Source: Phaeosaccion multiseriatum
Lineage: Eukaryota > Protista > Ochrophyta, other classes
DNA length: 64,000 bases
Direction: 5' to 3'
Assembly (NCBI GenBank): GCA_965112735.1
Contig: OZ218954.1
Location: 2,666,001 to 2,730,000, forward strand
The stretch's first letter is position 1, and each line of letters opens with the position of its first letter. The translations under genes and the position numbers were made by a program. Positions 42,159-55,686 of the stretch are shown in pieces. The notes under the pieces were generated by a model. That model saw nothing but the letters and a program-made list of their open reading frames with translations, had not been told where the DNA came from and searched no databases.

Positions 42159-44960
42159 TCATTGTGATGCTCCTTTGCTCTGACCCGCGCGGCCTCCTCT
42201 CCTGACCTTGGCAGAGGGGGGGAAGAGCGTCCCTGCCTTGGTGAGCTCTGCGTCCGCTTGATTGAGGATGGCAAAGTCATCCTCCAGAGGCATCACCTCC
42301 CTGCTGCTACCTGCCCCCCCTGACTTCTTGGGAGCCTTAGGAGCGAACAAGTTGGCCAGCGAAAACGGGTTGCTTGTTTGCTCCTTCCTCCCTTCCGACG
42401 CCGCCGGCTCCCCTTCCTCGAGGAAGCCGAATGCCTGACGAAACTCTCTTCCGTTGGATTGGATGTCGTTGGCAAGGTGGCAGGGGATGATGCGCTGAAA
42501 AGCCCAGCCTGCTACTTGGTCTGCCCACTCCAGCGTAGCCTCTGGTGCCCTGTTGAGAATGAGCTTTTGGAGGATGGGCGCCACGAGCAGGCCCCCCTGC
42601 AGGGCGTTGAAGGAAGGAACATCATCCCGACTCCACTAAGGGGTGTGGCGGGAGGCAGGCGGCAGCGCGAGCGGGTGGGCGGGTGGGTGGGTGAACACAG
42701 GGGAGGGGGGGGGGTAAGAGAGATTGGGAAGATGGGCCACACACACACCACACACACACATAAGCTCAAAGCAGGGAGGTAGGGAGGGAGGGAGGGGGAA
42801 GCAGTAGCAGCAGCATCAGCAGCAGGAGCGTGAGCAAGAGCAGCAGCAGCTTCGAGGAGAGGGCGAGGTACGGTAGCGGCTGTGCGCCCCAACGACTTCG
42901 CAGGGAGGGAGAGACTAACAACTCTACATGGATACATCTATCATCGATCATCGATCAAGCAAGCTGCCTGGGCAGCTCTCAGCCCAACACAGCGCAGCTC
43001 CACCCCACCCCACCCTGGCCAGTTGCCCAGCGTAGTCCCTCCTACACTTTACCTTGAAGGGGAAGAAGCCTCCCCAACCGAGCTCCTTCATAGGTGACTT
43101 GTCGGCTTCCTTGTACGCCTCCCCCAGGTCCAGCACGTCGATGGCGCTCGGCTGGAAGAATAGGCCGAACTGTGCTCGCGCACACACACACGCGCACACA
43201 CACACGCGCACACACACACGCACACACACACACGCGCGCGCAAACAAGCACATACAGCACGCAGCACAGGGAAAGCAAAAAGGGGCTGATAGTCAAATGG
43301 AAAGCCCATCAGCCAGACCTAACATCCTTGAGGGGTGGCCTGCTATCGGTGCCGGTCTGCGTGCCATCTCCTGCTGCCGCTCCATCCCTCGCTCGCTCGT
43401 TGGCTCACTCCCTCTGCTCACCTGCACAATCCTTCGCCATCCCTTCTCCCTCACTGCGGGGGTGTCCTCGACCTTCTCGGAGCCGTCGTCTCGGGCGTGG
43501 AACAGCAGAGAGCGCGGGTCTGCTTCCAAGATACCAGGCACCTCCTTGTCCACCTTCACCACCACATCCGTCACCAGCAAGGTCTTGGTGGCCTGTCTCA
43601 CACACACGAGAGAGGGTGGACATGATTCGATATGACAGGCATAGATAGTATGGTGAGAGCAGAGCAGAACAGAAAGGGGAGAGTGAGCGAGGTGAGGGAG
43701 CTAGAGTGAGCGGAGTGGAGTAGCTCGAGCAGAGGCGCTGCCTCCCCCCCCCCCTCCCCCGTCCCCCCTCCTTGCTGCTTCGCTTGCCTTGTGGAAGAAG
43801 GCAGTCTCTCCGAAAGCTCCAATCTTGTTCTTGGAGGGGAAAGGTCCCAGTACCGCGTGATCGAACTCGCTGGCCCATGGGGCATCCTCTACTGCCCGTG
43901 GGATGTCCTTCACCTCCCTTGCCCCGAAGCCGAGCCACTGAGTGGGCAGGTTGAGAGGGAAGGCATACTGCCCAGGCATGACGTATACACTCGCCTTGGG
44001 GAAGCGCTGGGCAAAAGGCCCCGCGAACACCTATACAAGAGTCGAGCACCAGCCACAGCGAGCAGGACAGCCAAAGCCAGCCAATGGGTGGAAGGAAGTC
44101 AGCGTGGGCCCGGCAGGCGGCTCAAGTACAGCGTCTTCGGCAATCAAAGAGTTCAGACGAGACAATGATCCCCCCACCCCACCGAGGCGGCAGCTGCACT
44201 CCCACTACGGCTGCGCAGCAGTCGTACCTTATGTTCCAGCCCAAGCGTTGGTAAGACAATATACTTGACAGCCCCGTGCTCCTCCTGCTCAAGACACGAC
44301 ACGACGGAGAGGCAGAGCAACTCGCAACTTGAGTGCAGCGGGGGCAGGAAAGCGCCGGTCTGTGTAGGAAGCAGAGCTTTCCCTCGCAGAGAGACATATA
44401 CATACCTCGAGAGCCTTGACCATGTCGATGCACTGCTTCGTGGCCGCCAGAGGGGCGTACACCAGCAGCCCCCCCTCCTCCAGCTTAATCACCGTCATCC
44501 GCGTTGGCACAAACACGTACAAAATGCCCTGGAGCTGGTCGAACGTCCACACTTTACCTGGGACTACCTCGGTCTGTAGAGTGGCTCGCTTGGTGTACGG
44601 AGCAATGGGGAGCACGAACCACAGAGGCCAATCTATGCCTGCTGAGTTAGCCCGAGCAGAGCCACCAGAGGTCGCCATTCCCAGCGTGCTTCCCCTCCGC
44701 CGAGACGTGGAGCGCGACGCAGAAGAGTCACACGGGAGCTCCCGAGATGCATCTGATCCTAAGGCGCAGCCTGGCCGTTCTGCTGCCACTGCTGCTTGTG
44801 TTGTTATTGCTGGGTTTGGGTTTGCTCTTCGCGCCGGGCAGGGCGTGAAAGTGAATGCTGCTCCTCCTACCAAGCACACCATCAGTAGCAGGTAGCCGAG
44901 TGCACTACCCTGAGGCTGCAACTGCCGCTGTCGCTGCCGACAGCATCGTACTCGCATCAT
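42159..44960 (-). CDS. DUF4336 (metallo-hydrolase-like) protein with probable bipartite plastid presequence, multi-exon
   Basis: WPLWFVLPIAPY.KR.T...EVVPGKVWTFDQLQG, RMTVIKL..GGLLVYAP, ETAFFHK|ATKTLLVTD, RIIPCHL; signal peptide ending GGAAF. Confidence 0.88.
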
Positions 44961-45132
44961 GACAACACTGAGAGATGGGTGACGATGTGACTCGCCGGAG
45001 ATGGCAACAAAAGACCCCTTTGGCCTCCACTGCCATTTGTAACTGCGATTGGACTCACCGGATATAAAGCAACTCACCGGATATCCGCGTTGGCGCCGCT
45101 GCGCTGCCTATCCACAGAGACATCGCTCGCTC

Positions 45133-47175
45133 ATGACAGAGGAGGGCAGCGAGAATGGGTGGCTCGACCGCTACTTTCTGCTGAGTGAGAGAGGGAGCTC
45201 CGTGTCTCGAGAGGTTCGGGCAGGATGTGCCAGCTTTCTAACGATGAGTTATGGACTACTCGTCAACCCCCAGATGCTGGCCTTGGCGGGCATTCCGCAG
45301 GAGGATGCGGTTGTCGCCACTGCCGCTGCGTCGGCAGGCGCTTCCCTCCTGGTTGGACTGGTAGGGAACCTGCCCTTCGGCCTGACGCCAGGAGTGGGGC
45401 TCTCTTCCTACCTTGCGTATAGCCTGGTGCTGACTGGCATCTTGGACAAGACTCAGGCGTTGACTTGCTGCATGGTGGCAGGGTTTTTGGTGGCGGCCTG
45501 CACGCTGACGGGTCTGTCGCATTACATCACGGACCTGACCCCCACGCCCGTGAAGCGAGCCATTGTGGTGGGGATGGGGCTGCTCATCGCGCTCATCGGC
45601 CTGGTGTCTGTAGACCTTGTTGTGGAAGACGAGGACTCCATTGTAGCCTTGGGCGATCTGACAGACTCCCAGATCATTCTAGCGCTGACCGGCCTGACCC
45701 TTATTGTGACACTTAGCATCCGGAAGGTGCCAGGCGCCCTCTTGCTGGGCATCGTGTTGATCTCCTTCACCTATTGGGTTTTCATCGGCGGCTTTCCCGA
45801 CAAGGTGGTGCGCTGGCCAACCCTGGAGGATTCCATCAGCGACAACATCAGCTTCGGCTCCCTGAACTCTAGCTGCATCATGCCGATACTGGCCTTCCTC
45901 TTTGTCATGCTCTTCGACGTGTCGGGGGTCATGTTCGGTCTGAGCTCGCTGGCGGGGCTGCAAGACGACAAGGGCTCTGTCCGGGGGGGTACGTCGTGCT
46001 ACCTGAGCTGCGCGGCCGGTACCATTATGGGAGGGGCCATGGGTACTAGGTAAGCAGCTCGTGTGGCTGTGGCTTCCTGGGCAGTCGGGAGTAGAGTCAC
46101 GGGCTCGTTGCTCACCACATGCTAAAATACCCGCACCGCCCCCCCAGCATTTGTGTTGCCCACCCCTTAAGCATTGCGCTTGCCCTCCCCCCCCACCTCC
46201 TCTCTTTCCCCCCTCTACTCGCCACCTCGCCACAGTCCGGTCATCTGTGCCGTTGAGAGCGCCGCGGGGGTGGAGGAGGGCGGGCGGACCGGGCTGACAG
46301 CGGTGACGGTGGGCCTGCTGTTCCTGTCCAGCCTCTTCTTCTCGCCCCTGTTTGGAGAGGTACCCACGTGTGCAACATCGCCTGTGCTGGTGCTCGTCGG
46401 CGCCATGATGATGAAAGAAAGCAGGTGAGTGATTGTCTGTGTTGGGCACATGCATGATGGAACACGTGCCTCAGTAAACACGCCTGCATTTGCTCGACCT
46501 CCCCCTCACCCCTCGCTCCCCCCCCCCCCTCACCCCTCACTCCTCCCCCCTCCCCCCTCCTCGCACCATTTCACCCATTCTTCCTCTTTGCTTCCCTTCC
46601 CCTCTTCCCCTCTCCCCCCCACAGCTTCATCAACTGGAACAAGTAAGTGCTCCGTGTGTACTCGCTAGCACGGCACTCTTCCTCTTTCCCCACTGCACCA
46701 GTCCCTCCTCCCTCCCACCTTTGCCAACCGAGTCCTCCCCCATTGCCCTCCCCCCCCCTTCCGTCCCAAGCCCTTCACCCTAAGCTACGCACGCACCACC
46801 CTTACGTATCGCTACCCTTGCCCTCGTTTTCTTGCATGTGCCGTACCCTCCACTCCTCCACTCCTTCCCTCTCTCAGTCCGAGGGAGGGGTTGCCTGCCT
46901 TTCTGTGTGTGGCTATGATGCCGTTCACATACTCCATCCCCAATGGCATTCTCTTCGGCGTGGGTGCTTCGCTGGTGCTGTACTTTACGACTGGCGACTT
47001 TTTGAAGGCCTGCAGTACCTCCCAATCCGACGACGATGACGATGACGAGAACGCCCCTCAATCGCAGGCTGCCGTCTTGGACGGCACCAGTGGATCTGAC
47101 TCGCATCTCCTGGGGGGAGAGGCCCATACAGGGACCGGAGGGACCTCAACATACGGGACGCTTGCCCCCCGATAG
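45133..47175 (+). CDS. AzgA/AZG-like purine (adenine/guanine) permease, NCS2 family; 4 exons
   Basis: [43 protein letters not shown]|[30 protein letters not shown]. Confidence 0.92.
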
Positions 47176-48615: not shown

Positions 48616-49335
48616 CTACCCGCCTGCTTCTGCTCCTTCTTCTGCCTCTTTCAACGCCTCCCCAAAGGCCTTCTCCCTCCAGCGCACCAAGCCGCCTGCG
48701 CCCCCCTCCCCGCCCTCCCCCGCCCCCGACGGCCCCAAAAAGCCATCCGCCTTGAAGGCGCTGAAGGGCTGTTGGTCCAGAAGGGCTCTAGCGTCGCTCA
48801 CGTCCCCAGTGATGGTCTGTACAAGCTCTGGGAAGGAGGCGAACTTGCGCTCCCTTCGCTGGAAGCCCACGAGCACGAGGCGAAGCGTCTGTCCGTAGAA
48901 GTCTTCCCCACTGTAGTCAATCACGTGCGCCTCTACAATCTTCTCGGGGTTCTCCTGTGCTCCACACAGACAAGGGGACAAGAGGAAGGAGAGGATAAGA
49001 GCAGCAGCGGCAGCGATTCGGCAGGGCAGCGGGCCATGGCAAATAGGCAAAAGGGCGGTGTGGCTCATGAAAGGGGGGCAGAGCAGCGGGTTTGGCGCTC
49101 CTCTCTTGCTCTCTTTCATCGCGACCTTCTCCCTCGCCGAAGGCAAACAGTCTGAAAGGCCAGCAACACCATCACCCCCAAGTCCTTCAGGCACACGAAC
49201 CTTTCCTTCGAAGGACGGCGAGTACCCCACGTTAGCGATGACCTTTTGCGGTTCCTGGGCTTCTCCTTCTGCCCCCTCCACCAAACCCCACCCAAAGTAC
49301 ACCCCTATTGGCGAATACGAGGGGAGGAAGGGAAG

Positions 49336-49381
<46 letters not shown>

Positions 49382-51394
49382 AAAGGGGAAAGAACTCTGT
49401 TAGCGTTTGAGTTTGGAGTGCGAAGGAGACGAGGCGAGAAGCGTTTTGAAGGTCACTGGAAGGGCCTTTGATTTCTACAGAGAGAGAGAGTAGGCCTCAA
49501 CGCACATACATACATACATACATACGTAATACATACATACATACATACATACATACATACATTCATTCATTCATACTGCACGCTTGGACAGACAGGCGCC
49601 ACTGAAACATCCAAGCCCTTCCCAGCCCCACAGCTTATGCTGCTGCACTGCAGTCACTGCGTCGCACTCACCCGTGGGCATGTTCTCCAGCGCGTCGTTG
49701 AAGAGACTCTCCGGTAGATTGGCCGTGGGCACGCCGATCTTCTTGCTCCCCCTGCCATAGCCCTGCGACACCTCGCCCCTGAGATACACGCACTTGGCCA
49801 GCTTGTTGAAGTGCATGCGGGTGAGGGTGGCGAGGTAGAAGTCAGGCTCGTCGCTCAGCTCAGAGAGAGTCAGGGGAAGGAACTGCGGACGGGGGGAAGG
49901 GTGGGGGGGGGGGGGGGGCATTGATTAGGGCAGGGCCAGGGGTAGGTATATGGGTATAGGTCTAGATAGGTGCGGATGATTTTCAGAGGTTGAAGGGATG
50001 GAATACGGAGCGCGGAAACTCCAGAAGAAGGAAGGCCAAGGCTTACGTAAGTATACCCCTTCCAGGACACAAAAACACAAGAGAGAGGCTTTTAGCTTTG
50101 TACGCCTCCATGTATACCCCCGTCGTACCTCGGTCATCTTTTTCAGCTGTTCTCCCGAGGGAAGAGGGTGTGGTACGACGGAGGGGTCTCGTTGGCCGAG
50201 CATTTTGACAAAGTCTGCCCCGAGGGGGTGCGAGATGACTGCTGTTCCGCCCACCTTGAGCACGTCGGCGGCGTGTGCCAGCTGCTGCCGCTGATCGAAC
50301 ACGTTCCCAAACACAGCGTTGAAGATGACGCTGTCTGCCAGTACCCTGCGAGAGAAGCGCCACAACGGCCCCGTGGAGGACGAGGGATAGGCACGGCCCC
50401 AAAGGAGGAGGGTGTCAATATGTGGCTTTCGGCCGGGAAGCGCAGGGTACATTGGTGACCCGCTTGTACGAGCGTAACACGGCCAAGCCATTCACCCTGT
50501 TCCCCTTTGTCATCCCCCCCTCCCCCCCCCCCCCCCAGCGCGCCCCCACAACAGCACCGGCTACCCCTTCCCTCCTCCACGCACCCTGGAGGCGGCGTCC
50601 AATCCACAAAGTCTGAGCGCACGGCCGTCGCTTCGGAGTGTCGTTCCTCGAAGATTTCAAGCATCGTCGCCGACAAATCAATACCCGTCACATTCTGAGG
50701 TGCCACCTTTCGCCGCTCCTCCAGAAAGGGCAAGAGCACTCCTGTCCCCGTCCCCACATCGACGACGGTACCTCCTTCCGGCGCTTGAGTGGCATCAACA
50801 ATGGCCTCGAGTTTTGAAGTCACGTCCTCGGGATGCTCCAGAAGGCGTCTGACATTGACATGTGGTATGGAGGAGCGGTCATGGGGGAGGTGATCCCACA
50901 AGGCATGGGGAGGGAGGAGGAAGGGACGCTTTCACACAGGGGCAGGCAGGCGGAGGAGGAGGGAGAGAGCACAAGCATGCAAAGACAAGATGCTTTCCTG
51001 ATGGACTTACTCGACTTGCTCCCATTTCTCGAAGATCTCCTGTTGGCGCGTGTTGTGTGAATCCCTGTCAAGCACACGGGAGCGCCAGCACGAGGCAAGA
51101 GCAACGCATTGGACACATTGACATGCACAAAGAGAGAGTGGAAGAAGCAGCAGCCCACCTTTCGCTCGACGGCACCCCATCTGCACTCCAGCCTGTTGAC
51201 GGCCTCTCCCTGAGCCTGGACTTGTTGGCTCGGCCTTTGCCGCCGCTGCTGTTGTGCTGCCTGGTGCAGCTGTAAGGCGCAGCCCTCCTCGTGGTCGGGC
51301 AGAGCGGCGTTAGGAAGGACTTTGCTCGTGGTGCCAAGAGACAAAGTAACAAGACTCTGGACGGATGCACACGGCATCTTTGCCCCACCCTCAT
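48616..51394 (-). CDS. Class I SAM-methyltransferase - riboflavin kinase fusion protein with probable plastid presequence, multi-exon
   Basis: VLLLCLLAPRAKSF presequence; VVDVGTGTG, GIDLSATML, DSVIFNAVFGN, LKVGGTAVISHP; then GEVSQGYGRGSKKIGVPTANL, GVYFGW, NVGYSPSF, EAHVIDYSGEDFYG. Confidence 0.88.
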
Positions 51395-51709
51395 GCTTTT
51401 GCTTTTGCTTTGTTTCTTCTTTGCTTCTTGTATCATTTTTGATCCATTTTTCATTTTTCACGAATTGTGTCCAAGTTCCACGCGTGTTGGTGCTCCAGAA
51501 CCTGCTTTGGCAACAGCGCGGAGGAGGACTCCGCTGAAACAATCGGGCCAAAGAAAGCAGACAAGGAGTGCCGCAGAAGAGTGAAGCAATAGCAGCATCA
51601 GCATTAGTATCAGTAGCAGGAGCAGCAGCAGCGGCAGAGGGGCTGAAAGGGAAAGTGCCAAGTCGTTCGAAGTCCTTTGGGAGGGGGCACGACATTGAGT
51701 ACGACGGAG

Positions 51710-53574
51710 ATGAATCGTCGGCCGCCTCTCGATTCCAAGTCGCGTGAAGTGAAGGTAGTCCTTTTAGGAGATACAGGTGCGTGGCGTGCATGTGTGCAGT
51801 GGCAGAGACGGGTTCTGTATCGGACAGCGCGCGCCCGGCAGATCAGTCAACGGAGCGAGCTTTCCGATGGCGGGATTCTGTGAGACCGGCGCTAACGGCT
51901 TTGGAATCAATCTACTACAGGAAGGGGTGGGATGACGTGACCAGTGTGTCGGACTATGGAGAGGAAGGGAAGGGAGGGCTTGAGGAGCAGAAGGAAGGAG
52001 GGAGAAACGTTTTTGATCCTTGAGCTTTTCTCGGGTGTTCATCCTCGCTTTCCCTCTTGCCACCTACCTTGCCCACCCGTCTATGTCTCTCGCTCTCACT
52101 CACTCCTGCACTGGTACCTCCCTCCGACCGAAAACAACACAACGAGCAGGTGTAGGCAAGTCCTCGCTGGTGTTGCGCTTCGTGACCAACAACTTTAAGC
52201 CCTACAGCGAGAGCACCATCGGGGCCTCCTTCATGAGCAAGATGATCATGCTGGACAACGTTCCTATCAAGTTCCAGATCTGGGATACGGCGGGGCAGGA
52301 GAAGTACCATAGGTGCGGTGTCTGGGGCGGGGAAAGAAGGGTGGAGTGGCCCTGGCCCTGCAGCTTCAAACGGCCTCTGCCTCGGAGGGGCAGACTGATT
52401 GGGGGGGGAGAGGCAGGAATGAGAACGACCAGAGGAAAGAGGACGTTATCATCGACGCGGTGCCCCTCCTACGATCTGCCATGTCTCCCTCCCACCTCCC
52501 CTCCCTCATTCCTGCCCCACATTCTAAGTCCCTCTTTTCCCCTGCCGGCACTTGCTCCATCCCTCCCTCGTGCCTCTCCCCACCATCTTATACCAGTCTG
52601 GCACCAATGTACTACAGAGGAGCGGGAGCGGCCATCCTTGTGTACGATATCACCAACAAGCAGTCCTTCAAGACACTGAAGGACTGGGTCAGCGAGCTGC
52701 AGACCCAAGGGCCCCAGGTTTGTGGTGTACTGTACTCGGAATGGGGGGAGGGAGGGAGGAAGGGGCGCTTTTCTTCCCCTTAGCGCACAGTTACAATTAG
52801 GGGGGGGGGGGGGGAGAATGTCCTGTCCCGCAAAGTGCGCAAAGTGGACATGCTTGACATCGACACGAAGGGCGAACTGTACTCTACTGTACAGTACCGT
52901 CTGTGCCTTGCCAGAACGAGGGGGAAAGAGAGAGCTTCCAGCCTGAGAGCCGGCTGAGTGGCAAACGCACTTTCACTGGGGAAAGTAGAAGAGCGGCCCT
53001 GACTTGATTTTAGCATAACAACTCTCTCACTCACTCACTCACGCACTCCCTCTCACTCTCTCTACCGCCTGTCTGCCCCCTGCCCGCCCCCTACCGACTG
53101 TTGCACTGCACTGACTGCAGGACATAATCATCGCCATCGCAGGCAACAAGGGTGACTTGGAGGCGGACAGGGAGGTGGATGCCTCTTCGGCCGAGGCCTA
53201 CGCGCAAGAGATCGGAGCCATGTTCTTCGAAACAAGCGCCAAGGACGACACCAACGTCTACGACATCTTCGTCGACATTAGGTGTGTGTGTGTGTGTGTG
53301 TGTGAGTGTGAGTTTTGTCCAGGGAGCACGTCCCCTCCCGGCTGGTGTGTGCTTCCTATACGTGGTACCTCCTGCCCCTCATGTCACGTTCGTCTCTCAC
53401 GCATTACTTTTGCTCTTCCTTTACTGTGGCCCCTCTTCGCTTCCGGTCGCCTCTGCTCCTCTCCCCCCCCCCCCTCCCCGCAGCAAGCGGTTACCCGCCC
53501 CCTCTGCAGACCGGGCCCACGCCCCCGACACCATTGCCCTTGGCGGCAGCAGCCCAAACACGACGTGCTGTTGA
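51710..53574 (+). CDS. Rab GTPase of the Rab5/Rab22 group, multi-exon
   Basis: LLGDT|[24 protein letters not shown]|[21 protein letters not shown]-terminal CC prenylation motif. Confidence 0.95.
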
Positions 53575-53764: not shown

Positions 53765-55420
53765 CTATCCTTTGAGCGGCTTCAGTCCGAGCTTGGCCCT
53801 CTCGAGGTTCCAGAACTCGACAGTGCCTTCCTTGACCTTGGCGTCTTCCCCCTCTGCTTTGCTGCCAGTGCTCTTGTTGCTCTTGTCCGACTTGAACAGC
53901 CGACTGTATCTCTTTTCCGCCTTCCTCTTCTTCTTTTCTCGCTGCTTCTCGTCTGCATCAGCCCCCCCGCCACCCCCGCCGCCCACCTCTCCCTCCTCTT
54001 CCTCTTGGTCCGCCTCCTCTGCAGCAGCAGGCGAGCCTCGTCCGCTGTCCTCGCCCTTCTTGCCGCCGTCATCTCTGCGATACCTGCTTCCCCGTGCTTC
54101 GTCTCTTCTCTCATCTCTGTCGCGCCCTCGCCTCCTGTCCCTCTCTCTGCTCCTGCGGTGCCCTCCTCTCCCTCTACTGCGGCTGCGGCTGCGGCTGCGG
54201 CTGCTACCGCTGCTACTGCGGCTCCGACTTCTGCTGTCCGCCCGGCCGCTCCGCCTTCTTTGGTCTCTGCCCCGGCCTCGGCCGTGGCTCCGACTGCGGC
54301 GCCTGTCCCTCCTCCCGCTGTCTCGTTCTCTCCCTTCGTCGCGTCGACGGCGCTCATTCCTGCTTCTGCTCCTACTCCTGCTCCTGCTGCTACTGCTCTC
54401 GCTGTAGCTCCTGCTCCTTCTTCTCCCCCCCCTACTCCGACTGTCACTACGCCCTCTCCCTCCCCTTCCACGACGCCTGTCGTAAGACCTGTCATCTCTC
54501 TCGCGACTCACGCGGTGCCTCTTGCTTCTGTCTCTATCCCTGTCTCCATCTCGACGTGGACTCTCTTCCCGCCGCCTCCTCCTATCTCTGCTGTCACCCC
54601 TCTCCCTCGATCGCTTGCTCTCTCTTTCTCTTGTACCATTTCTATCACTGGAATCACCTCCCCGCTGCCGTTTCCGCACCTCCTCACCCGCCTTCTTCGC
54701 GTTACTCTCCTCGTGATCCTCCACTTCCATCCTGTCCTCTGCTCGTTCCCGCTTCTGCTGCTGCTGCTTAGCCTCTCCTCCTCCTCCCCCCCCCTCCGCC
54801 CCCTCCTCCTCCTGCTGCAGCGACCCTTCCTGCTCAGCCAGGAGGGCCTCCGCCTCCCAGTCTCCCTCGAGTCCAGTCTGATAGGGCTTCTTCAGCAGTC
54901 GCACATCCTCCAGCGCCTGGCGGGCAGGGAGACGTGGAAGTGCAATATCGCAAAAGTACTCTGCGTGCAGCAGCTCGTCTACGATCTGATCAATAGTGGT
55001 CAGCTGCCACCCGCCAACATTCCTCAGGCGAGCCTTGCGAAGGTCGCAGTACAGCGGCTCGAGATAGTGGTAAATGTCCTTGGGCCGACCCACCAAGCGC
55101 AGGTAAAAGCAGCCCAACAACCTCACATACTTGTACTCTTCGTTCTTTATGAACTCGAGCACAATCTCCTTCTCCGGTTGCAGCTGCAGCATCTTCAGCA
55201 GCAGGCAAAGGAACTTGGTCGGCTTGTTGTTCCCTCCGTAGGTGCCGCCAATGTACTGAATGTCCAGCGCACGATCCACCAGCGTCTCAACCGTCAGCCC
55301 GAAGCACTTCTCCTTCCAGTACATGTGGTTGTAGATTTTCGTTCTCGTGATCTTCTCCACCAGCATCTGGGGATCGGTGCCGTGCACTGAGGCCGCCAAA
55401 GGGTCCGTCTGGTTGGCCAT
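53765..55420 (-). CDS. PRP38: Pre-mRNA splicing factor PRP38 with RS/RD-rich tail, intronless
   Basis: MANQTDP.A.SVHGTDPQ.LVEKI.R.KIY..YWKE.CFGL, KPTKFLCLLLKMLQLQP, KYVRLLG.FY.R; C-terminal N.ERAKLGLKPL. Confidence 0.95.
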   Translation of the reverse strand: MANQTDPLAASVHGTDPQMLVEKITRTKIYNHMYWKEKCFGLTVETLVDRALDIQYIGGTYGGNNKPTKFLCLLLKMLQLQPEKEIVLEFIKNEEYKYVRLLGCFYLRLVGRPKDIYHYLEPLYCDLRKARLRNVGGWQLTTIDQIVDELLHAEYFCDIALPRLPARQALEDVRLLKKPYQTGLEGDWEAEALLAEQEGSLQQEEEGAEGGGGGGEAKQQQQKRERAEDRMEVEDHEESNAKKAGEEVRKRQRGGDSSDRNGTRERESKRSRERGDSRDRRRRREESPRRDGDRDRDRSKRHRVSRERDDRSYDRRRGRGGRGRSDSRSRGGRRRSRSYSESSSSRSRSRSRSRNERRRRDEGRERDSGRRDRRRSRSHGRGRGRDQRRRSGRADSRSRSRSSSGSSRSRSRSRSRGRGGHRRSRERDRRRGRDRDERRDEARGSRYRRDDGGKKGEDSGRGSPAAAEEADQEEEEGEVGGGGGGGADADEKQREKKKRKAEKRYSRLFKSDKSNKSTGSKAEGEDAKVKEGTVEFWNLERAKLGLKPLKG

Positions 55421-55686
55421 GGTGCCCGCCAATGCTCAAAATCGGCTCAGGTGCGCTCCTCCTTCCGCCGCCGCCCTATCTTTTCGTTCTTCTTACTCGT
55501 TTTTTTCCTTATGGGCGCCTCTGCACAGGCAGCGCCCGGAGATCTCTGAATATGAAGGCTGAGCGCAGTTGACCAGAACCGGACTTCATTTCATTAACAT
55601 AGAGGCGGCCCCCCGGGGTTTGGTGGTTCTCCACACGACCGACGACAGAGCAGAGTGGGAGTAATTAAGAGAAAGATTGAACCAAC

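Follow-up and report, generated by a model that had tools for sequence, protein, structure and literature searches.

What kind of protein is made when a methyltransferase and a riboflavin kinase are encoded together, and does the pairing point to a link between methylation and flavin metabolism? The question is raised by a gene on the minus strand at positions 48616-51394 of a 64,000-nucleotide stretch of DNA from the ochrophyte Phaeosaccion multiseriatum (assembly GCA_965112735.1, contig OZ218954.1, positions 2,666,001 to 2,730,000 of the forward strand), which is referred to here as the window. Our analysis indicates that this is probably one nuclear gene for a plastid-bound, two-enzyme protein of about 474 residues, in which a kinase that makes flavin mononucleotide (FMN) is joined to an independent methyltransferase of the S-adenosylmethionine (SAM)-dependent kind. 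A preliminary description of the locus had regarded the architecture as unusual and had suggested that it might couple FMN synthesis to SAM status or to methylation of a flavin-related substrate.

The gene is divided into seven exons, the ends of which were located by script, totaling 1425 nt or 474 codons and a stop. All of the introns are GT...AG with exon 3 ending at 50585. The exons, and the intron that lies just ahead of the junction of the two domains, are as follows.

51394-51159, minus strand: exon 1, with the ATG at 51394; codes for the presequence; the donor GT at 51158 and the acceptor of exon 2, which is in phase 2, set its frame
51064-51011, minus strand: exon 2, the start of the conserved methyltransferase module, with the N-terminal helix and HN..Q...F
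50848-50585, minus strand: exon 3, the N-terminal half of the methyltransferase, with VVDVGTGTG (motif I), GIDLS (the acidic residue of strand 2) and SDF (motif II)
50345-50129, minus strand: exon 4, the C-terminal half of the methyltransferase, with the family-specific FNAVFGN, SHPLG and VPHPLP and weak Pfam matches
50128-49883, minus strand: intron 4, 246 nt, phase 0, GT-AG
49882-49672, minus strand: exon 5, the junction exon, 70 residues, of which 1-22 are methyltransferase strands 6-7 (...DEPDFYLATL) and 31-70 are the first kinase strand and GxGRGSKxxGxPTAN
49304-49201, minus strand: exon 6, the middle part of the riboflavin kinase, VYFGW ... NVGYSP, placed by orthologue alignment
48954-48616, minus strand: exon 7, the C-terminal part of the kinase, with VEAH and GF.R.E.KF and a Flavokinase match at 5.7e-12

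Domain tests were run exon by exon, and statements about the whole protein rest on these tests together with orthologues. When full-length orthologues are searched against the window (tblastn), they give collinear segments over exons 3-7. Their query coordinates pass the exon 4/5 junction without a gap and with no residues missing; for the orthologue P0033, for example, the segment for residues 220-288 stops at 50129 and the next one, for residues 288-359, begins at 49885. The phase-0 intron placed at 50128-49883 by the preliminary description is confirmed by these matches. Its removal joins ...LKKMTE to FLPLTLSELSDEPDFYLATL..., and the same exon runs on into GEVSQGYGRGSKKIGVPTANL. Retention of this intron, by comparison, would bring the frame to a stop at 49925 and leave a methyltransferase without its last two strands.

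The position of the junction was read from a structure modeled with AlphaFold2 for the 392-residue Chrysoparadoxa orthologue P0013, using an 80-sequence alignment (predicted local distance difference test score 88; predicted template modeling score, pTM, 0.86). In this model the methyltransferase occupies residues 40-245 and the kinase residues 249-392. The last methyltransferase strands are at 225-233 and 236-243 and the first kinase strand is at 247-258, leaving a linker of about three residues between the domains. Because exon 5 begins at approximately residue 222 of P0013, it encodes the last two methyltransferase strands as well as the start of the kinase. The junction therefore lies inside a single exon through which both domains are read, and the earlier claim that the fusion is one reading frame holds.

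The same description stated that both domains keep their core motifs, and this agrees with what we found. In a family alignment of 53 sequences, to which the exon translations were added as separate fragments, the window protein keeps 58 of the 64 columns that show at least 85% conservation. The six missed columns comprise the start Met, two exon-junction positions, and three conservative replacements (Ala to Gly, Val to Ile, and Thr to Ser), and no conserved motif of the family is lost in the window copy.

The kinase is identified by two separate exons. Residues 31-58 of exon 5 match positions 4-30 of Flavokinase (PF01687) with 25.5 bits, and exon 7 matches positions 70-124 with 46.4 bits, the cutoff being 19.6 in both cases. 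Exon 5 contains the GxGRGSxxxGxPTAN motif, GYGRGSKKIGVPTAN, and exon 7 aligns to residues 72-143 of human riboflavin kinase (1nb0), which places the Glu of VEAH at the E of ...METH.... This Glu is invariant in the family, and its counterpart in the human kinase is catalytic. All 19 invariant columns of the 80-sequence alignment are kept, 18 of them scored directly and one, a Gly whose codon is split between exons 5 and 6, read by hand. Between the kinase and the stop codon, exon 7 encodes about 38 further residues rich in Gly, Glu, and Ala.

A profile of the family scores better against human riboflavin kinase (1.9e-51) than against bacterial RibF (1.2e-25), so the kinase is of the eukaryotic kind, nearer the human and yeast kinases than RibF. 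The kinase of P0013 has the six-strand beta-barrel fold and resembles human RFK (1nb0) and Schizosaccharomyces pombe Fmn1 (1n05) in fold and motifs (Z 15.5 to 1nb0, root-mean-square deviation 2.3 Å over 127 residues, 35% identity), although both of these, unlike the window protein, are stand-alone, non-plastid proteins. Fusion of a riboflavin kinase to a second enzyme also occurs in plant AtFMN/FHy, where the other domain is a HAD phosphatase, and in RibF, where the kinase is likewise the C-terminal domain and follows an FMN adenylyltransferase. In the window the partner is a class I methyltransferase, in contrast to the HAD hydrolase of AtFMN/FHy and the nucleotidyltransferase of RibF. No exon gave a Pfam or NCBIfam match to a HAD or FMN-adenylyltransferase (FAD_syn) domain, and the NCBIfam RibF models matched the kinase part alone.

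The methyltransferase is recognized by exon 3, which matches Methyltransf_25 (3.7e-08, 34.4 bits, cutoff 27) and Methyltransf_11 (26.7 bits, cutoff 21.2), and by a weak Pfam match of exon 4 to the C-terminal half of the domain. It contains the class I SAM signature, with VVDVGTGTG for (D/E)xGxGxG and the acidic residue of GIDLS at the end of strand 2. The motif R..HN..Q...F of the family aligns with exon 2, in which the Q and F are conserved, and the seven-strand sheet is completed by exon 5, where residues 1-22 align with strands 6-7 of P0013 and with the C-termini of bacterial homologues. The motifs of the fusion family (HN..Q...F, FNA.FGN, SHPLG, VPH.LP, and Y.A) are all present, and every conserved methyltransferase position is kept (D, GxGxG, the strand-2 Asp, NA.FGN, HPLG, and VPH.LP). 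With its SAM-binding signature intact, the domain looks active, judging from these residues.

What the methyltransferase acts on is less apparent from its relatives. NCBIfam yields no model at cutoff for this domain, giving sub-threshold matches to generic methyltransferases. Among solved structures, the P0013 domain shares its seven-strand fold and N-terminal helical cap with PmtA (8ys9), UbiG (4kdr), and Hvo_0019 (6f5z) at Z 18.1-18.5, the top value being 18.5 and the list falling from there to 15. Identity to the orthologue is just 17-21% for these three, and NA.FGN, SHPLG, and VPH.LP are particular to the family described here. Toxoflavin N-methyltransferase was considered as a clue to the substrate and set aside, as its Z of 16.6 does not stand out among the structural neighbors. 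Most likely, the domain is an independent methyltransferase predicted to act on a small molecule or lipid.

The architecture is not unusual, contrary to what had been supposed. The junction exon alone, searched against 1.84 billion representative proteins, gave 216 matches at E ≤ 0.001, many of them to proteins of 390-680 residues in which the whole 70 residues align at positions 250-450, and in 10 of 10 representatives checked both a methyltransferase and a Flavokinase domain are present. Word searches with two full-length orthologues found at least 120 proteins each (240 listed). Nearly all of the listed homologues carry precomputed methyltransferase and Flavokinase Pfam domains, so that well over 100 proteins in many algal lineages have the same layout. 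Those from non-green algae include Ectocarpus, Pylaiella, Undaria, Chrysoparadoxa, the xanthophyte Tribonema, several diatoms, and the cryptophyte Hanusia. Among streptophyte algae the fusion is listed for Chlorokybus, Mesostigma, and Spirogloea, and among chlorophytes for, among others, Coccomyxa, Chlorella, Auxenochlorella (where it is named RFK2), Scenedesmus, Chlamydomonas eustigma, Haematococcus, Ulva, Bryopsis, and Tetraselmis. As the architecture is common in algae and publicly visible, the premise of rarity fails.

Several of these homologues come from transcriptome assemblies (MMETSP, Trinity), indicating that in species other than this one a single mRNA carries both domains. The window protein is nearest to members from Ectocarpus, Pylaiella, and Chrysoparadoxa, at about 45-60% identity per exon. 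It shares its domain order, family motifs, and tight junction with algal fusion proteins such as those of Ectocarpus, Pylaiella, Chrysoparadoxa, Fistulifera, Chaetoceros, Coccomyxa, and Chlorokybus, as well as the kind of presequence with the ochrophyte members, whereas its own presequence and Gly/Glu-rich C-terminal tail are species-specific. In UniRef, NCBI, and JGI the fusion proteins are named at most "riboflavin kinase". In the literature searched we found neither a paper on a methyltransferase-riboflavin kinase fusion nor a tested methyltransferase function for any algal fusion protein. The window gene is thus an ordinary member of a family known to the databases and biochemically uncharacterized. 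In a 429-residue protein of the liverwort Calypogeia fissa (P0348) the Flavokinase domain is complete (281-413) and the methyltransferase signal only faint (154-209), and bryophytes may retain the fusion in a decayed form.

The methyltransferase module is also found on its own. A search of genomes of bacteria and archaea for a motif around FNA.FG, built from 8 sequences, located it at 20 loci in Obscuribacterales/Melainabacteria, Acidobacteriota, Planctomycetota, and Acidimicrobiales. The bacterial proteins are 199-218 residues long (one ends at a contig edge), are 34-42% identical over the whole module, and carry all of the family motifs, with DEPDFYL a few residues before the stop, at the point where the kinase is attached in algae. 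No flavin-related neighbors of the module were found in Obscuribacterales, Acidobacteriota, or Planctomycetota, and the neighbors differ among the three. Those that are kept (formiminotransferase-cyclodeaminase, an acyltransferase, CDP-diglyceride synthase, and YibE/F) are kept within Obscuribacterales alone. In six genomes of this order (loci L006, L010, L011, L015, L017, and L018) the module is divergent to an adjacent gene for a three-domain formiminotransferase-cyclodeaminase, and genes for CDP-diglyceride synthase and YibE/F lie a few kb downstream, an arrangement kept within the order only.

A eukaryotic stand-alone copy of 263 residues, containing the family motifs, was found on a 28.8-kb intron-poor eukaryotic metagenome contig, where the adjacent gene is on the opposite strand. 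A quick tree of the module, with support from the Shimodaira-Hasegawa-like approximate likelihood ratio test only, separates bacteria from eukaryotes (support 93) and shows two eukaryotic clades, one green and the other containing the ochrophytes. The eukaryotic copies that stand alone fall within the second of these, beside a fused member (support 97), which suggests that their kinase was lost secondarily. An assignment of the stand-alone picoeukaryote copy to green algae was dropped, as the tree puts it in the ochrophyte-side clade. Most likely, the algal methyltransferase descends from a stand-alone family also found in bacteria.

The protein encoded by exon 1 has a basic n-region, a hydrophobic core, VLLLCLLA (Kyte-Doolittle mean 3.44 over 8 residues), and then AKS/F, with the Phe at residue 27. 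The 52 residues that follow the Phe are 25% Ser and Thr, 17% Arg and Lys, and 6% Asp and Glu. Exon 1 has no homology support, as is expected for a presequence, and two further in-frame ATGs upstream, at 51454 and 51436, are possible alternative starts. A hallmark of import into complex plastids of the red type is a signal peptide with Phe directly behind it. In nine ochrophyte orthologues a hydrophobic signal peptide is followed at once by Phe (...SCMA/F, ...HCQA/F, ...FINA/F), and the suggestion of the preliminary description that the protein is plastid-targeted is in keeping with this pattern. Most likely, a bipartite presequence sends the window protein to the complex plastid, as far as its residues allow this to be predicted.

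In green algae, an apparent two-domain relative of the family has been localized. This is Chlamydomonas RFK2 (Cre01.g025250), a Venus fusion of which is found in the chloroplast and enriched at thylakoids (preprint 10.1101/2022.05.31.493820). Its sequence, as given with the preprint, was compared by eye. RFK2 has 390 residues and a layout like that of the window protein, its complete riboflavin kinase being preceded by a Rossmann-like N-terminal domain. However, its motif I is LVVGSGAVP, and by eye it lacks the D.G.G.G, NA.FGN, and SHPLG that the window protein keeps. Its transit peptide is of the simple green type, in contrast to the bipartite signal of the window protein.

Together, these features can be placed in a simple model. 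The presequence, a signal peptide and then a Phe-led stretch resembling a transit peptide, would bring the protein into the complex plastid, where the C-terminal eukaryote-type kinase would convert riboflavin and ATP to FMN. Riboflavin itself is made in plastids. The FMN formed there could be supplied to a plastid flavin adenine dinucleotide (FAD) synthetase, while the N-terminal class I methyltransferase would act on a small-molecule or lipid substrate of its own. The chloroplast FAD synthetases of green plants do not have a riboflavin kinase active site (PMC2972280), and for this reason a separate plastid riboflavin kinase is needed in the green lineage.

That FMN synthesis is coupled to SAM status, or that a flavin is methylated, is not favored. 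The two activities look separable, because the module occurs alone in bacteria, stands alone again in one picoeukaryote clade, and by eye appears decayed in RFK2, where the kinase is kept. Separability does not prove that a flavin link is absent, and such a link is unsupported rather than disproved. It is rather improbable that the conserved methyltransferase has its substrate in flavin or plastid cofactor metabolism. If it did, the rigid three-residue junction would have been kept from streptophyte algae to brown algae since the two active sites share the same or successive molecules, and the stand-alone bacterial homologues would offer an easy route to the substrate.

Several points weigh against the model of a plastid-bound protein with two independent enzymes. 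The structure modeled is that of the orthologue P0013, in place of the window protein, and the list of structural neighbors of its methyltransferase is flat and generic, pointing to no substrate class. The run search gave no RNA run for this genome; four matching runs contain a fraction of 0.96-0.98 of the words, introns included, and therefore look like DNA. Exon 1 and the start codon are placed by sequence logic. Since the methyltransferase motifs of RFK2 are decayed by eye, its localization carries over by homology alone, and a kinase-less plastid FAD synthetase in Phaeosaccion would be an extrapolation from green plants. One alternative concerns the N-terminus: the protein may not be targeted to the plastid, its N-terminus being a plain secretory (endoplasmic reticulum) signal, a mitochondrial signal, or the artefact of a wrongly chosen first exon. 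The lack of homology support for exon 1 fits with this, as do the short hydrophobic core of 8-9 residues and the upstream in-frame ATGs, which would add a Lys-rich extension of 20 residues. However, the nine ochrophyte orthologues, whether named or best-matching, have a signal peptide followed by Phe, the stretch after the Phe is hydroxyl-rich, basic, and acid-poor, and the apparent relative RFK2 is in the chloroplast. Moreover, a divergent Rab-like gene has its ATG just 316 bp upstream, leaving little room for another first exon. We consider a destination outside the plastid unlikely.

Alternatively, the methyltransferase domain may be no enzyme and serve the kinase as a scaffold, a membrane anchor, or a SAM sensor, as perhaps in RFK2, which keeps the two-domain layout with LVVGSGAVP as motif I and with NA.FGN and SHPLG gone by eye. 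The three-residue linker and the pTM of 0.86 also suggest a rigid unit. Against this, the window protein keeps every conserved methyltransferase position, and the same residues are conserved in the stand-alone bacterial homologues, which have no kinase to regulate, so a purely structural or sensory role seems quite doubtful. It would be more surprising still if the locus gave two products, a methyltransferase ended by retention of intron 4 and a kinase made alone from an internal promoter or start at the Met of ...TRMHFNKLAK.... This Met, eight residues ahead of the first kinase strand, would provide a normal N-terminus for a stand-alone kinase, and stand-alone methyltransferases are known in some picoeukaryotes and bacteria; the outcome of the run search is also compatible with separate products. 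Yet there is no stop codon between the domains, the last two methyltransferase strands share exon 5 with the start of the kinase, retention of intron 4 truncates the methyltransferase fold, and the orthologous transcripts of other algae are single open reading frames. This possibility is very improbable, and we infer a single protein with two catalytic domains.

The Rab-like gene mentioned above encodes a Rab5-like small GTPase (51677-52679, plus strand; Pfam Ras 1.4e-18), with its ATG near 51710. It is divergent from the fusion gene, with which it probably shares a bidirectional promoter. Next along the window, at 53765-55432 on the minus strand, is a single open reading frame of 555 residues, in which a PRP38 splicing-factor domain (4.2e-62) is accompanied by a long tail rich in Arg, Ser, Asp, and Glu. 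On the other, downstream side of the fusion gene, the interval 44289-46053 includes a piece of a DUF4336 protein (minus strand, 2e-21) and a xanthine/uracil-permease-like gene (plus strand, 1.6e-15). Within the fusion gene, introns 3 (50346-50584), 4 (49883-50128), and 5 (49305-49671) contain simple repeats and homopolymer runs: a G run in intron 3, a long C run in intron 4, and in intron 5 an (ATGT)n repeat followed by (CT)n at 49322-49397.

As a further member of its family, the window gene leaves the picture of plastid flavin metabolism unchanged. The algal fusion family as a whole is an obvious candidate for the separate plastid riboflavin kinase in algae. The attached methyltransferase, which is conserved over several algal lineages and stands alone in a few bacterial phyla, has no curated family, no solved close relative, and no mention in the literature searched, and with it a methylated metabolite may be made beside FMN in algae.

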